NCBI GenBank assembly: GCA_002269645.1
Contig: NIVC01001037.1
Coordinates: forward strand, 248,001-312,000
Length of the DNA stretch: 64,000 nt
Direction: 5' to 3'
Source: Macrostomum lignano
Taxonomy: Eukaryota
Within the stretch, counting starts at the first letter, position 1; each line of letters begins with the position of its first letter. Positions 10,224 through 18,942 of the stretch are shown one piece after another. A program made the translations under genes and the position numbers. The notes under the pieces were generated by a model that was not told the DNA's origin, searched no databases, and saw nothing but the letters and a program-made list of their open reading frames with translations.

Positions 10224-11230
10224 ATGCAGCTCCGGGCAGGTGGCCGCCTGCTGGCAGGCGTCCTGCTGACAGTCGGTCTGCTGCTCAGCGCAGCGACGCC
10301 GTCGTCAGTCAGTGTGCTGGCCGCCGTGGCCACCGGGGACGGCGGCGGCATCCGGCAGGGCGCAGCGGCCCCGAACTACACGAACATTGTTGACCGCATT
10401 GTGGAGAGCATCTTCCAGGGCTACAACAAGCACCAGCGTCCGGTGCCGGCCCGCCGCTCCCGGCCGGACGGCCGCATTGAGGAGGACTCCACCGTGGTGT
10501 TCGTCAACATGAAGATCCTCAGCATCAACAAGGTGGACGTGATCAACATGGAGTTCACGTTGGACATGTACCTGCGCCAGTACTGGAAGGACCACCGCCT
10601 CATGTGGAACCACAACCAGTTCCGCTTCTACAACGAGTCCATCGCCATTCCCGCCAAGAAGGAGAACCTCTGGCTGCCGGACCTGTTCTTCCGCAACGGC
10701 AAGGAGGGCTACCTGCACAAGATGACGCAGCCGAACTACCTGATCAGAGTGGACCCGGACGGCAGCATTCTGTACTCGCAGAAGGTGACCATGAAGTTCT
10801 CTTGCCAGATGCAGCTGCAGACGTTTCCTATGGACACGCAGACGTGCTACATCAACATCGGCAGCTACGGGTACACCACCAAGAACCTGGAGTTCCGCTG
10901 GCTGAAGGGCAAGAAGAGCCCCGTCGAGTTGGACTCTAGCATGCAGATCTCCGAGTTCAACACGCCCAAAAGTGTCAAGGTGATCGACTGCTCGAAAAGC
11001 AGCACCACCAGCACAGGCAGCTACGCGTGCCTGAAGGCCGTCTTCAAGCTGGAGCGGCAGCTGGGGAGCTACCTGTCCGCTACCTACATCCCCGCCATCT
11101 TGATCATCGCTGTGAGCTGGCTCAACTTCTGGATCAACGTTGAGGCCGTGCCCGCCAGGGTGTCTCTGGGGCTGCTCACCCTGCTGGGCATCCTCACCCA
11201 GGGCATGTCCGTCATCAACAACCTGCCCAG
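10224..11230 (+). CDS. Cys-loop ligand-gated anion channel (GluCl/GlyR-like), variable exon A: signal peptide, extracellular domain, M1, M2
   Basis: ATG 10224 starts a signal-peptide-like MQLRAGGRLLAGVLLTVGLLLSA. Motifs: LWLPDLFF, Cys-loop CQMQLQTFPMDTQTC, loop-C Cys pair, M1 YIPAILIIAVSWLNFW, M2 PARVSLGLLTLL. The exon ends at AG|GTGAGT (phase 2) inside LPR. Joined to 18459..18942 it gives a 496-aa ORF. Confidence 0.9.
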
Positions 11231-11284
11231 GTGAGTGGTGGAGTCTGAGCAGTTTTATAGCAAGGATTCTCAATCTTGATTTGG

Positions 11285-11545
11285 ATGGAACTCTCCATCC
11301 TGGTTGGGGGTCCTTGGGGAATCTCCATCCTGGTTGGGGGTCCTTGGGGAATCTTCATTTTGGTTGAGTGTTCTTGTGGGAATCCCCATCCTTGTTGGGT
11401 GTGACTTGTGAATCTCCATCCTGATTGGTGTCACTGGGGAATCTCCATCCTGGTTGGGTGTCCTTGTGAGAATCTTGGGTGTCCTTGGTGAATCTCCATC
11501 CTTGTTGGGCGTCCTTAGGGAATCTCCATCTTCGTTTGGTGTCTT
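11285..11545. repeat. Degenerate ~29 bp minisatellite (AATCTCCATCCTGGTTGGGTGTCCTTGGG)
   Basis: About 8 imperfect copies just after the exon A donor. Confidence 0.8.
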
Positions 11546-12397
11546 TGAGAGAGTTTAGATTTCTTGGCTATTGGCAAAACGCAGTCAATGTCAGCATTCT
11601 CTGCACCGCCTAAGCTGTTATGACTTTTCATTAGAAGTTCTTCCCAAATATTAAAAGAATTATTGTAATATTTTCACTCTCAATGTCGCGCGCTGAGCCA
11701 CTAGAGAGAGCGAGAGAGCTCACAGCACACCAGGTGAGCAGGGGACGGTGGGGACCCCTTGCTGAGAAGGCAGGAGGAAAAAGCAAAACTTCACCTCCAC
11801 ACTTCTCAGCGGTAGTGGGAGGGTCTGGGAGAAGAGTGGAGAGCATAGTGGCCTTGAGAAGCTAGAGAGTTGAGTAGCCAACAGTGCCGGTGAGACTTGC
11901 GCCATCTTGCGGTCTCCGCCACTCTCCTCAGCTCTCCGCCTCCGCCGCTAACGCCAGGCAAATTGAAAAAGTCTCAGTCCAATCTCGCTGGGAAATGGAG
12001 CTCTGGAGTGAGTTAGTTACCCGGGGAGTCACCGATGTGCTGTTCTCCATGCAGTTTTGAGTATGAGTCCTCGGACGAATAAGTGCGATATAAATAAAGC
12101 AAGGCTATGCATAGCGCTATGAGCCCTTGACGACCCACTTTGGGGACGGCCACTCGCTCCTGCACTGCGAGTCGCATTTCTGTCAGTATTGCCTGGGCCC
12201 GGAGACTGTCGGGCATGAGAGAATGAGTCTGCAAATTCAACAGGCTGTGGCGCAGGCTGAAATCAGTGGCAGCTTAGCAGGACCAAAATATGTTAGCAAA
12301 ATCTGAGTAGCCATGCACTGTTTTTCTGCTATATGGAATGATAGCATTCTATTAATCTATCTATTAATGACGATATTCTTGCAGTCTGAGTGTACAA

Positions 12398-12780
12398 CAA
12401 AACAGACAGACAGACAGACAGACAGACAGACAGACAGACAGACAGACAGACAGACAGACAGACGGACAGACACACAGACAGACGGACAGACAGACAGACA
12501 GACGGACAGACACTAAGACACTAAGGCACTAAGACACTAACTAAGACACTAAGACAGACATACAGACAGGCAGACAGACAGACAGACAGACAGACAGACA
12601 GACAGACAGACAGACAGACAGACGGACAGACACACAGACAGACGGACAGACAGACAGACAGACGGACAGACACTAAGACACTAAGGCACTAAGACACTAA
12701 CTAAGACACTAAGACAGACATACAGACAGGCAGACAGACAGACAGACAGACACACAGATAGACGGACAGACGAACAGACA
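12398..12780. repeat. (GACA)n microsatellite containing a duplicated ~165 bp higher-order unit
   Basis: The block GACGGACAGACAC...CACTAAGACACTAAGGCACTAAG...CATACAG occurs twice. Confidence 0.9.
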
Positions 12781-12915
12781 AAGTGAGTCAAATACATACG
12801 GGTGTGTGGTCAGACGCATACATACGAGCTACATGGCGCAAAATGAGTCGGATAATGCGCAAAGGACTGGGTCAGTCAGTCTGACGCAGAGGAAAATGCT
12901 ACATCGTGTCAGAAA

Positions 12916-16250: not shown

Positions 16251-16959
16251 CGTAGCCCTTTAACATTTAATCGCTCTTAAGCTCTTGTCAGACTCTCCGG
16301 GCCACAGAAACTTCTGTTCGCCCCCTGATCCCTCAGAGAACTCGGTTTCTTAGTGTCTTAATCGCTAACATTGCCAGCTGCAGAAATCCAGCAGTTACAA
16401 GTGAATAGAAACCCCCAGCATCCATAGGTGCCACATCCCAGCTCCCTGTAAGTTCATCTATTTCCAGCACCGGGATGGAGTTGCAAGCACAGCATCATCT
16501 ATCCAGAACTGCACCGCGTTAGTGAAGTGCAAGTCGGCCCCTGGGTCTCAGGTCAATCTCTTCCCTCCATCATAGTCCAGCTTATCTCCGCTGAACAGAC
16601 TGTCCAGCTCCCGGGATCAGTCATCGTCAGCGCTGTTTATGGCCTAATTTAATTAGGCCTCGGAAATAAAGCATTCACGCTCAACGTAGGGCAGGCTTCC
16701 AGTCTCTTTGTCCCTCCATCCGGGGTGAGCCATCGTCAATGAGCAGCAACTGAATTAATGCGCGAGTTTGTTACTTGCGTTTATTACTGCACTTTTCAGG
16801 TGGAGCAGGAAGAAAGTTACAGGAAGTTTGGGATTTTCATTTCATTCGGCATTGACGTTAATTGCTATTTCAATTCTTAGCATTGAGAGGCCTGCTGAAG
16901 CAGATGGAAATTGCCCTCGCATATCCAGGGACTACTTAAACTGCGCATATCGTGCCAAC

Positions 16960-17108
16960 TGTCTGTCTGTCTGTCTGTCTGTCTGTCTGTCTATGTGTCT
17001 GTCTGTCTGTCTGTCTGTCTGTCTGTCTGTCTGTCTGTCTGTCTGTCTGTCTGTTTGTCTGTCTGTCTGTCTGTCTGTCTGTCTGTCTGTCTGTCTGTCT
17101 GTCTGTCT
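16960..17108. repeat. (GTCT)n microsatellite
   Basis: Directly visible. Confidence 0.95.
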
Positions 17109-17439
17109 GCTTTTGCCGCAGGCATTATGCGAGAATTTCTAAACAGAATTTGTCTATGGCCAAACCTCATTAAGCGCTGTGCGAAAGGAAACAATTCTTT
17201 GAGAAACCCGTTTAGAAAACAAAATGTTTCTTGATAGACTTGGTTAGTTTAGCATTCCTCCGCTTCGGCGGTCCGTGTTTGGAAGATGCATTTTAAAAAA
17301 TCAACGATGATTTGCAACTCATGCTACTTACTTCCTAATTAGCCTGTATGAAACACGATAATGCGGTAGGCGCAGTTTAAGAATTTGGCCTCAGACTCTT
17401 TAAGTGGCTCACTGTTTGGGCCTTGGAAATAAACAAGGA

Positions 17440-18415
17440 TGAATGGATAAATGGATGAATTAATGAATGGATGAAGGGATGAAGAGATACGTGAATGAAG
17501 GGATGAAGGGATGAAGGGATGAAGGGATGAAAGGAATGAAGGGATTAATGTACGAATGAATGAATGAATGGATGATAAGATAATAGGGGAAGGGATGAAT
17601 GGATGAATGAATGAAGGGATGAATGGATGAAGGGATGAATGGATGAAGGGATGAATGGATGAAGGGATGAAGGGATGAATGGATGAAGGGATGAATGGAT
17701 GAAGGGATGAAGGGATGAATGGATGAAGGGATGAAGGGATGAATGGATGAATGAATGAAGGGATGAATAGATGAAGGGATGAATGGATGAAGGGATGAAG
17801 GGATGAATGGATGAAGGGATGAATGGATGAAGGGATGAAGGGATGAATGGATGAAGGGATGAATGGATGAAGGGATGAATGGATGAAGGGATGAATGGAT
17901 GAAGGGATGAATGGATGAAGGGATGAATGGATGAAGGGATGAAGGGATGAATGGATGAAGGGATGAATGGATGAAGGGATGAATGGATGAAGGGATGAAG
18001 GGATGAATGGATAAAAGGATGAATGGATGAAGGGATGAATGGATGAATGGATGAAGGGATGAATGGATGAAAGGATGAATGGATGAATGGATGAAGGGAT
18101 GAAGGGATGAATGGATGAAGGGATGAAGGGATGAATGGATGAATGGATGAACGGACGAAGGGATGAATGGATGAAGTGATGAAGGGATGAAGGGTGAAGG
18201 GATGAAGGGATGAAGGGATGAATGGATGAAGGGATGAAGGGATGAATGGATGAAGGGATGAAGGGATGAAGGGATGAATGGATGAAGGGATGAAGGGATG
18301 AAGGGATGAAGGGATGAATGGATGAATGGATGAAGGGATGAAGGGATGAAGGGATGAAGGGATGAATGGATGAAGGGATGAAGGGATGAAGGGATGAAGG
18401 GATGAAGGGATGAAG
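17440..18415. repeat. Purine-rich compound satellite (GGATGAA[G/T])n
   Basis: About 1 kb of GATGAAGG/GATGAATG units ending ~40 nt before the acceptor at 18457-58. Confidence 0.95.
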
Positions 18416-18458
18416 TGAGAAAGCAGACCTTCACGCACCGCCAACCGCAACTCCGCAG

Positions 18459-18942
18459 GGTGGCGTACATCAAGGCCATAGACATCTGGATCATCGCCAG
18501 CATCATGTTCGTCATCGGCGCTCTGATCGAATTTGCTGTGGCCTCATTCCGCGCCAGGCGCACCAAGATGGAGAGCTGGCAGCGCGAGATTCGCGGCGTT
18601 GTCCGCTCGGAGCTGCAGCGGCTGGCCGTCATCCGCGGCGGCGGCCTCCCGCCCGGCCTGCCCTGCCACGGCGGCGGCGGCGGCAACCTGCACGGCTATC
18701 CCGGCTTCCCGGAGGAGCTCGAGGACCTCCTGACTGCCAGCGTTGAGGACGGCGGCGGCGGTGGTGGAGCCGGCGGTCCTCACGGCAACAACAAAGGAGC
18801 GCCACCGGCTCCGGTGCCATCGCCAGACTCCGACATCGACACCTACAGCCGGTTCGTGTTCCCCGCCTGCTTCCTGCTGTACAACTGCTTCTACTGGCTG
18901 TACTACCTGGTGCTGGTGAGCACCATCAACCCTGATGAGTGA
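18459..18942 (+). CDS. Cys-loop anion channel terminal exon: M2-M3 linker end, M3, intracellular loop, M4
   Basis: Acceptor caactccgcAG|G completes the Arg of LPR and continues VAYIKAIDIWIIASIMFVIGALIEFA (M3) ... DIDTYSRFVFPACFLLYNCFYWLYY (M4). Stop TGA at 18940-42. Confidence 0.93.

Follow-up and report, generated by a model that had tools for sequence, protein, structure and literature searches.

Exon organization of the locus

The stretch of 64,000 nucleotides analyzed here (the window) is Macrostomum lignano assembly Mlig_3_7, contig NIVC01001037.1:248001–312000, and its forward strand harbors what is predicted to be a Cys-loop receptor gene of the glutamate-gated chloride channel (GluCl) clade. 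The exons concerned are two tandem variable 5′ exons, A and B, and one constant 3′ exon, C. The presence of two 5′ exons, each intact, and of one exon for the membrane helices M3 and M4 in the window is confirmed. Positions of features without a prime are window coordinates; primed letters denote the counterparts at a paralogous M. lignano locus.

Exon A (10224..11230, +) begins with an ATG and encodes a hydrophobic signal peptide, the whole extracellular domain, M1, and M2. No stop codon interrupts it from the ATG to ...GMSVINNLP-AG|GTGAGT, where the last two bases belong to an Arg codon (phase 2). Its donor, CAG|GTGAGT, is located at 11231..11236 (+), and the equivalent donor of the paralog (CAG|GTAGGC) is used in the annotated A′+C′ protein described below. 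Exon B (14864..15846, +) has its own ATG and signal peptide, followed likewise by the whole extracellular domain, M1, and M2. It is open from the ATG to ...ASTVMGSLP-AG|GTTTAG and ends in phase 2 at the same codon as exon A, with the donor AAG|GTTTAG at 15847..15852 (+). The shared-codon phase-2 donor (LP-AG|GT in both exons) had been pointed out in an earlier reading made from the letters of the DNA (the sequence-only reading) and holds. Exon C (18459..18942, +) encodes (R)VAYIKAIDIW..., that is, the end of the M2–M3 linker and the beginning of M3, followed by a Gly/Pro-rich intracellular loop, M4, and a TGA stop codon at 18940–18942. Its acceptor, ctccgcag| (18451–18458, +), lies directly 5′ of 18459 and is the only one. 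No AATAAA poly(A) signal is found within 300 nucleotides 3′ of the stop codon.

Conceptual splicing gives uninterrupted products of 496 amino acids (aa) for A+C and 488 aa for B+C, the lengths proposed before. M1 and M2 are supplied by exons A and B, and M3 and M4 are gained only by joining exon C. The locus accordingly has two paralogous first exons in tandem, which carry separate start codons and donors of equal phase, an organization conserved in the paralog, and a constant 3′ part that is shared without a private 3′ exon for the upstream variable exon.

The A–B interval (11231..14863, +), which is intronic for A-initiated transcripts, contains satellites (a 30-bp unit at 11287–11547, ACAG repeats at 12402–12780, and an AT-rich array at 13079–13197) and a possible short inverted-repeat element at 12953–14330. 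The B–C intron (15847..18458, +) is mostly composed of satellites, namely, a 25-bp unit at 15912–16255, CTGT repeats at 16959–17109, and GGATGAAG repeats at 17437–18415. The sequence-only reading had placed satellites and a hAT element between A and B. The satellites are there; the hAT element is not verified, since what is found are short inverted-repeat arms at 12953–13007 and 14253–14330, with no Pfam match or transposase open reading frame (ORF) among the ORFs scanned in 11231–14863.

Protein family and predicted ligand recognition

In Pfam, the A+C product matches Neur_chan_LBD (1.3e−48) and the transmembrane family Neur_chan_memb (5e−27), and the B+C product matches the same families (6.1e−46 and 1e−27, respectively). 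These matches and the open frames agree with the content assigned to each of the two first exons, from the signal peptide through the full extracellular domain to M1 and M2. The part encoded by each first exon (hereafter, head) has the Cys-loop C-x13-C CQMQLQTFPMDTQTC, and all four helices M1–M4 are present after splicing. The alignment with GlyR alpha2 spans M1–M3 and M4. Both heads also bear anion-type marks, AVPARV (Pro-Ala-Arg before M2) and DC...YAC (the second disulfide pair, in loop C). The best PDB matches are GlyR alpha1–3 (1.5e−72), GluCl alpha (3RHW/3RIF, 1.5e−67), and GABA-A beta. All top protein matches are flatworm SmGluCl-2-like proteins, with 52% identity to SmGluCl-2.

Glutamate recognition in flatworms is defined by an Arg in loop A (FFRNGK), an Arg in loop D, a Tyr in loop B, and a Thr/Tyr in loop C (PMC4338433). 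The motifs LFFRNGK, YLRQ, GSY(G/A)Y, and T(S/T)TGSYAC, which contain these residues, are found in both A and B. On these motifs and matches, the gene is assigned to the anion-selective Cys-loop receptors, in the flatworm glutamate-gated chloride channel (SmGluCl-2-like) clade.

Differences between the two heads

Exons A and B share a tract that is almost identical, located at 10496..10869 (+) in exon A and 15106..15479 (+) in exon B. It extends from β1 to loop B with 4 mismatches in 374 bp, and its flanks are divergent. The tract, ~37% of exon A, includes loops D, A, and E, the Cys-loop, and the start of loop B. The same near-identity across this core holds between A′ and B′. Identity in the core is 95–100% within a locus versus 72–92% between the paralogous loci, where it differs by 8–28%. 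The near-identical core within each locus is attributable, on this pattern, to concerted evolution by gene conversion.

Outside the tract, the heads are unlike in the signal peptide, the N-terminal helix, and the α1–β1 linker, where B has an insertion. Loop F reads KNLEFRWLK--GKKSPVELDSS in A and KNLVFHWKREQSTTQPVELDTS in B. The heads further differ in the first half of loop C (its flank) and in one or two residues of M1. Loop B differs in a single residue just beyond the end of the tract (GSYGY in A, GSYAY in B). In M2, position 2′ is Ser in A and Thr in B, and positions 15′–21′ are GMSVINN and ASTVMGS, respectively. The proposal of two subunits with different ligand-binding loops therefore stands in part: the N-terminus, loop F, and the loop-C flank differ, whereas loops D, A, E, and the Cys-loop are near-identical. 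The canonical agonist-contact loops are, by their sequences, the same in both heads, not different. The further proposal of different pore ends combined with identical M3, intracellular loop, and M4 agrees with the unlike residues in M2 and with the single exon C.

In GlyR and GluCl, residues at M2 2′ and 15′–20′ affect conductance, picrotoxin block, gating, and allosteric-drug sites. The differences at 2′ and in outer M2, together with the shared recognition residues, suggest that both predicted subunits are gated by the same agonist, glutamate, and may differ in gating or pharmacology.

Search for a second M3–M4 exon

The window was searched for another M3–M4 exon by tblastn (word size 2, E ≤ 10) and by unfiltered profile hidden Markov models (HMMs) for M3–M4, M3 alone, and M4 alone, which were built from 97 family members and run on the six-frame translation. 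In the 64 kb, on either strand, no second M3–M4 sequence is found by either search, and the single match is exon C. No relic of M3–M4 is found in 11231–14863 by tblastn or HMM. The claim of the sequence-only reading that exon C is the sole M3–M4 exon, without another M3 exon between A and B, thus withstands both searches. Exon C is followed on its 3′ side by unrelated genes (a glycosyltransferase family 92 ORF, two ORFs of ~830 aa, an actin-like ORF, and a kinase), so that a private exon for A farther 3′ is unlikely.

A paralogous locus with the same layout

The best match of the A+C product is the M. lignano protein P0001 (84% identity), which leads to a paralogous locus present in three copies with the same A′–B′–C′ layout: L001 (NIVC01001215.1:89717–116230), L004 (NIVC01001215.1:51026–79662, same contig, inverted orientation), and L003 (on another contig, NIVC01001142.1). 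Positions in these copies are copy-local. In L001, the A-type exon A′ is at 10001–10944, the B-type exon B′ at 22006–23000, and the sole M3–M4 exon C′ at 24824–25304. In L003 and L004, A′ also comes first, followed by B′–C′. The donors CAG|GTAGGC and CAG|GTAGGG and the acceptor TCACAG|G are in the same phase as those in the window. No private M3–M4 exon for A′ is found in L001 by tblastn and HMM, nor between A′ and B′ in L003 and L004 by tblastn.

Only the exons can be aligned between the window and L001 (~82% nucleotide identity); the introns and the flanking genes cannot. The glutaredoxin and aldolase genes upstream of the paralog are not found upstream of exon A in the window, which fits paralogy.

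Several features of the copies themselves are worth recording. The channel copies L001 and L004 are arranged head-to-head on NIVC01001215.1 with their start codons ~30 kb apart, forming a large inverted duplication, and each has glutaredoxin/thioredoxin and aldolase_II genes upstream. In L003 (10201–19308), the B′–C′ unit occurs twice in tandem (period ~5.96 kb) after a single A′, and the two B′+C′ products are identical; the doubling is either a real further duplication or assembly redundancy. The A′ start codon in L001 is situated at the edge of a 33-bp satellite array (9700–10003), its first codons look repeat-derived, and an older gene model (P0105) translates this satellite next to A′ as protein. 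A third M. lignano A-type exon is represented in UniRef by proteins from an older assembly (P0022, P0120, and P0121). It shows 73% identity and has the same GMSVINNLP end, and its proteins are again truncated or mis-joined at the M2 boundary.

Transcript-based annotation

The GenBank annotation of Mlig_3_7 is based on RNA only, combining RNA-seq processed with StringTie and TACO, a de novo transcriptome that was mapped, and ORFs from TransDecoder (PMC5730564). In this annotation, the A′+C′ product is already present as a "hypothetical protein" of 474 aa, P0119 (PAA70662.1/PAA71747.1; BOX15_Mlig000841g2/g5), which is a member of the 90%-identity cluster of P0001. Its junction reads ...GMSVINNLPR|VAYIKAIDIW..., exactly the conceptual A′|C′ splice in L001, L003, and L004, with B′ skipped. 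The gene spans from the A′ ATG to the C′ stop codon across B′ (L004 10001–18637 and L003 5044–19308). Since the annotation is derived from RNA only, P0119 gives transcript-level, though second-hand, support for the A′-to-C′ junction in the paralog. B′ is annotated separately in L001 with a coding sequence from the B′ ATG (22006–22804), giving a fragment of 261 aa. Joining of a variable exon to the constant exon is thus recorded for A′-to-C′ in the paralog annotation, and there is no record for B′-to-C′ or for the window locus. No Macrostomum protein containing exon C is found in the protein collection with either the full A+C sequence or the M2 end plus exon C as the query.

Selection on the exons and age of the duplication

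Ratios of nonsynonymous to synonymous substitution rates (dN/dS) were estimated by the Nei–Gojobori method between the M. lignano paralogs. The values are 0.20 for A versus A′ (dS 0.61), 0.21 for B versus B′ (dS 0.70), and 0.22 for C versus C′ (dS 0.46). Exon A has no stop codon or frameshift at a dS of ~0.6 from A′, and its M1–M2 part is strongly constrained (dN/dS 0.16). Outside the conversion tract, the ratio of the nonsynonymous to the synonymous proportion of differences (pN/pS) between A and A′ is 0.40 (Fisher p = 4e−7). This constraint outside the conversion core indicates that conversion alone cannot explain the integrity of exon A. These values point to purifying selection on exon A and uphold the earlier statement that it is not a decaying copy.

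The M2 end provides information on the order of the duplications. Across its last 19 codons, nucleotide identity is 98% between A and A′ (56/57 nucleotides) and 89% between B and B′, versus 79% between A and B and 77% between A′ and B′. Next to the donors the heads are more alike: A′ and B′ have the same final 11 nucleotides, and A and B differ at one base in their final 7. Because the type-specific M2 ends are kept across the paralogs, the first exon must have been duplicated earlier than the gene as a whole. A and B resemble each other in the coding exon only, and their flanks are unrelated, which also suggests an old exon duplication, not a recent copy.

Neighboring genes and repeats

Downstream of the channel exons, an ORF of 832 aa at 26109–28607 (−) shares 100% identity with M. 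lignano BOX15_Mlig006580g1 and 50% with Mlig026335g1. The latter maps to the position of a second tandem single-exon ORF of ~830 aa on the same contig (31416–33902, −). Both ~830-aa ORFs show only a sub-threshold LRAT-like Pfam match. The glycosyltransferase family 92 ORF at 24686–25420 (+) is without a gene model in the GenBank record examined (L005). This record agrees with 16109–38935 of the window at 100% identity over 22,827 bp, which, with the identity of the 832-aa ORF, identifies the window as M. lignano sequence. The actin-like ORF (an actin fragment) is at 35537–36484 (+), and the protein-kinase ORF is at 38885–39460 (+).

Short-unit satellites are very dense in and around the channel gene, with units of 4 to 37 bp in arrays of 0.3–1.2 kb, which include 771–1737, 2573–3008, 3687–4247, 4979–5485, 7427–7971, 8691–9655, 17437–18415, 19189–20011, 20574–21752, and others. 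The (GACA)n/(ACAG)n family occurs on both strands, in both introns, and downstream.

Proposed mechanism and alternative explanations

The inference that two 5′ exons share one M3–M4 exon is supported by the above results. We consider it probable that the locus is one gene of the GluCl clade in which either of two tandem first exons is used together with one constant last exon, producing two subunits of 496 and 488 aa. In a transcript initiated at A, the A donor (11230|11231) would be joined to the only acceptor (18458|18459), and the 7.2-kb intron, including exon B, would be removed. In a transcript initiated at B, the B donor (15846|15847) would be joined to the same acceptor. Choice of the 5′ exon would thus come first, ordinary cis-splicing would then join it to the single acceptor, and both splicing events presumably occur at the window locus. 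The products would share the end of the M2–M3 linker, M3, the intracellular loop, and M4, and would differ in the signal peptide, the N-terminal region, loop F, the loop-C flank, and M2 positions 2′ and 15′–21′. As for the history, duplication of the first exon came before that of the gene in the M. lignano lineage; afterward, gene conversion maintained a nearly identical agonist-binding core within each locus, and selection held the head-specific parts apart.

Each head would have its own promoter. A TATAAAA motif at 14813..14819 (+), 51 nucleotides upstream of the B ATG, is a possible core promoter element of exon B. The 50 nucleotides before this ATG are purine-rich and provide a poor acceptor (weak AG) context, which, together with the motif, fits an own promoter of exon B. 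A further hint in this direction is the separate coding-sequence model that begins at the B′ ATG.

A broader proposal is that both heads are expressed and functional, as a conserved "two-headed" Cys-loop receptor gene at at least two paralogous loci. The glutamate-binding core would be kept identical in the two heads by conversion, selection would keep loop F, the loop-C flank, and M2 2′ and 15′–21′ distinct, and the subunits would respond to the same agonist with different gating, conductance, or drug sensitivity, either in different cells or in a heteromer from one gene. We regard this proposal as evenly poised between true and false.

Several observations weigh against the two-headed gene and its expression. 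The GenBank record of the window has no gene model over exon C, and an exact look-up in the protein collection finds neither A+C nor B+C. None of the copies has an annotated B-to-C junction, and the three variants of B′+C′ are also not in the protein collection. The A′+C′ evidence is annotation, not reads, and is second-hand. The TATA-like motif of B has no conserved counterpart before B′. For 37% of exon A, the intact appearance could be due to gene conversion from B alone. Finally, the isoform P0001 (381 aa) in L001 joins the A′ donor to another exon (L001:16311–16511) that encodes an Arg-rich tail.

One rival reading makes exon A a silent leftover of a partial duplication, repaired by gene conversion from B, with only B+C being real. 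The window locus has no annotated transcript, and the 374-bp tract shows that A and B have exchanged sequence. However, exons B and C are equally unannotated in the window, so that the lack of annotation is not specific to A. The tract covers only about a third of the exon, and the constraint between A and A′ persists outside it. The M2 end of A, identical to that of A′ except for one nucleotide, is clearly distinct from that of B, and the frame is intact at considerable synonymous divergence. Moreover, the counterpart A′ is transcribed and spliced to C′ according to the paralog annotation. Silence of exon A is thus unlikely. Still somewhat less likely, in our judgment, is an exon A whose product is truncated (extracellular domain, M1, and M2), by read-through (LPR*) or through another 3′ exon, and which never joins C. 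Such products are known for Cys-loop receptors of nematodes (GLC-4B and Dirofilaria immitis AVR-14A; PMC8841521), and P0001 seems to be one at first sight. Its acceptor (L001:16311), however, is situated in a 4.25-kb segment (L001:16132–20384) that is absent from L003 and L004. The segment encodes SAP, RVT_1, and tyrosine-recombinase ORFs, which identify it as a DIRS-like retroelement, and the tail of P0001 is an out-of-frame reading of the first ORF of this element. Nothing similar exists in the window, and the two copies without the insertion are annotated as A′+C′. P0001 is therefore best described, from the composition of this segment, as a copy-specific exonization that truncates the channel, and it lends no support to a 3′ end private to A, although it reveals that A′ transcripts reach kilobases into the A′–B′ interval. 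The strong constraint on M1–M2 also suits a pore-forming four-helix subunit.

Another possibility leaves the layout unchanged and concerns how the 5′ end of the B mRNA is formed. In M. lignano, 38.8% of genes are trans-spliced and ~7% of assembled transcripts are multi-gene precursors (PMC5730564), and a pyrimidine-rich ...ccgctcccag|g is found upstream of the B′ ATG. The B mRNA could thus arise by spliced-leader trans-splicing of a long precursor starting at or upstream of A, in competition with A-to-C cis-splicing. In the window, by contrast, the region just before exon B is the purine-rich stretch with weak AG contexts and the TATAAAA motif described above, and we consider this route doubtful there. 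Assembly is a further concern, since the region is rich in satellites and the assembly is redundant (PMC5730564), so that a private M3–M4 exon of A might have been collapsed or lost. The A–B–C order without M3–M4 between A and B is, however, found in four places that were assembled separately (the window, L001, L003, and L004), and the extra copy in L003 is a B′–C′ unit, not an exon private to A. The A-to-C intron, with exon B inside, is of nearly equal length in the window (7,228 bp) and in L004 (7,212 bp). Such an artifact is very improbable.

If one gene with two alternative first exons and a constant last exon is indeed present, the M2|M3 boundary would prove usable as a joint in evolution, at which a whole ligand-binding domain and pore are swapped onto a constant M3–loop–M4 part. 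This boundary has already been used by receptor engineers for chimeras. The choice of the 5′ exon would then leave the trafficking and anchoring module (M3, the intracellular loop, and M4) constant. The locus would also be a natural experiment, in which conversion and selection sort the residues of the heads into those that must be the same and those that must differ, and which points to loop F, the loop-C flank, and outer M2 as candidate functional differences. GluCls of flatworms are candidate targets for anthelmintics, and M. lignano serves as a transgenic model, so that the isoforms could be tested in vivo. For annotators, it should be kept in mind that loci of this kind are broken up or shortened by gene-finding programs: P0001, P0022, and the 261-aa B′ model each stop at the M2 boundary or short of it.

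Comparison with known systems

Diversity among Cys-loop receptors comes mostly from duplication of whole genes, small mutually exclusive exons, or RNA editing, and unc-49 is, to our knowledge, the one classic case in which many subunits come from one locus. At this GABA receptor locus of Caenorhabditis elegans and Haemonchus contortus (Bamber et al. 1999), a common N-terminus is spliced to one of three tandem C-terminal copies (PMC8841521). As in unc-49, whose subunits can co-assemble, a single Cys-loop locus here would combine a shared block with one of several tandem alternative blocks to give several subunits. The arrangement is nevertheless the mirror image: the alternatives are the first exons, from the signal peptide to M2, and the common part is the 3′ M3–loop–M4. 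Because the alternatives are first exons, the choice must fall at transcript initiation or 5′-end formation. The nematode gene avr-14/gbr-2 (GluCl alpha3A/3B) is likewise a glutamate-gated chloride channel gene with two subunits per locus; unlike the exons described here, its isoforms have the ligand-binding N-terminus in common, and their differences lie in the channel and the intracellular C-terminal part (PMC8841521). Ecdysozoan GluCls of the avr-14 group recognize glutamate by an Arg in loop G, not by the flatworm loop A Arg (PMC4338433).

Among flatworm receptors, the closest functionally characterized one is Schistosoma mansoni SmGluCl-2 (Smp_015630), which has the same loop A Arg, loop D Arg, loop C Thr/Tyr, and Pro-Ala-Arg. 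It forms homomeric glutamate-gated chloride channels, and its two isoforms differ only slightly (PMC3757052). Unlike the M. lignano gene, those for SmGluCl-2 and SmGluCl-3 have one exon each (PMC3757052). The tandem paralogs of cestodes (P0039/P0061 and P0048/P0079) differ in that each of them keeps its own M3–M4. A GluCl-like exon with 64% identity is present on a contig from an unrelated AT-rich organism (ENA ERZ25070786 ctg72480l, 36% GC; L002:3364–3771) and ends at the same LPR| boundary, which dates the intron position to before Macrostomum. The gene model on that contig (P0118) reads into the intron, and the exon starts mid-domain, so that an intron is also present inside the extracellular domain.

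In the full-text literature, we found no paper that combines alternative first exons with Cys-loop receptors or ligand-gated ion channels, nor one on Macrostomum GluCl gene structure. The sequence-only reading had likewise not known the layout as one described for Cys-loop receptors, and the nearest precedent is the reversed one of unc-49. In the clustered protocadherins and UGT1A, tandem paralogous first exons with their own start codons and matching-phase donors are spliced to shared 3′ exons, and the downstream variable exons are removed as intron. Partial homogenization of the variable exons by gene conversion has been reported for the protocadherins. The locus in the window resembles these clusters in its variable first exons, its constant 3′ part, and its phase-matched donors. 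It differs from them in having two variable exons only, in belonging to another protein family, and in that the variable exon carries two of the four membrane helices, including the pore; the per-exon promoters are putative here. The alternative-first-exon layout is thus of a known kind, and within the Cys-loop family it is the reverse of the only arrangement described before.

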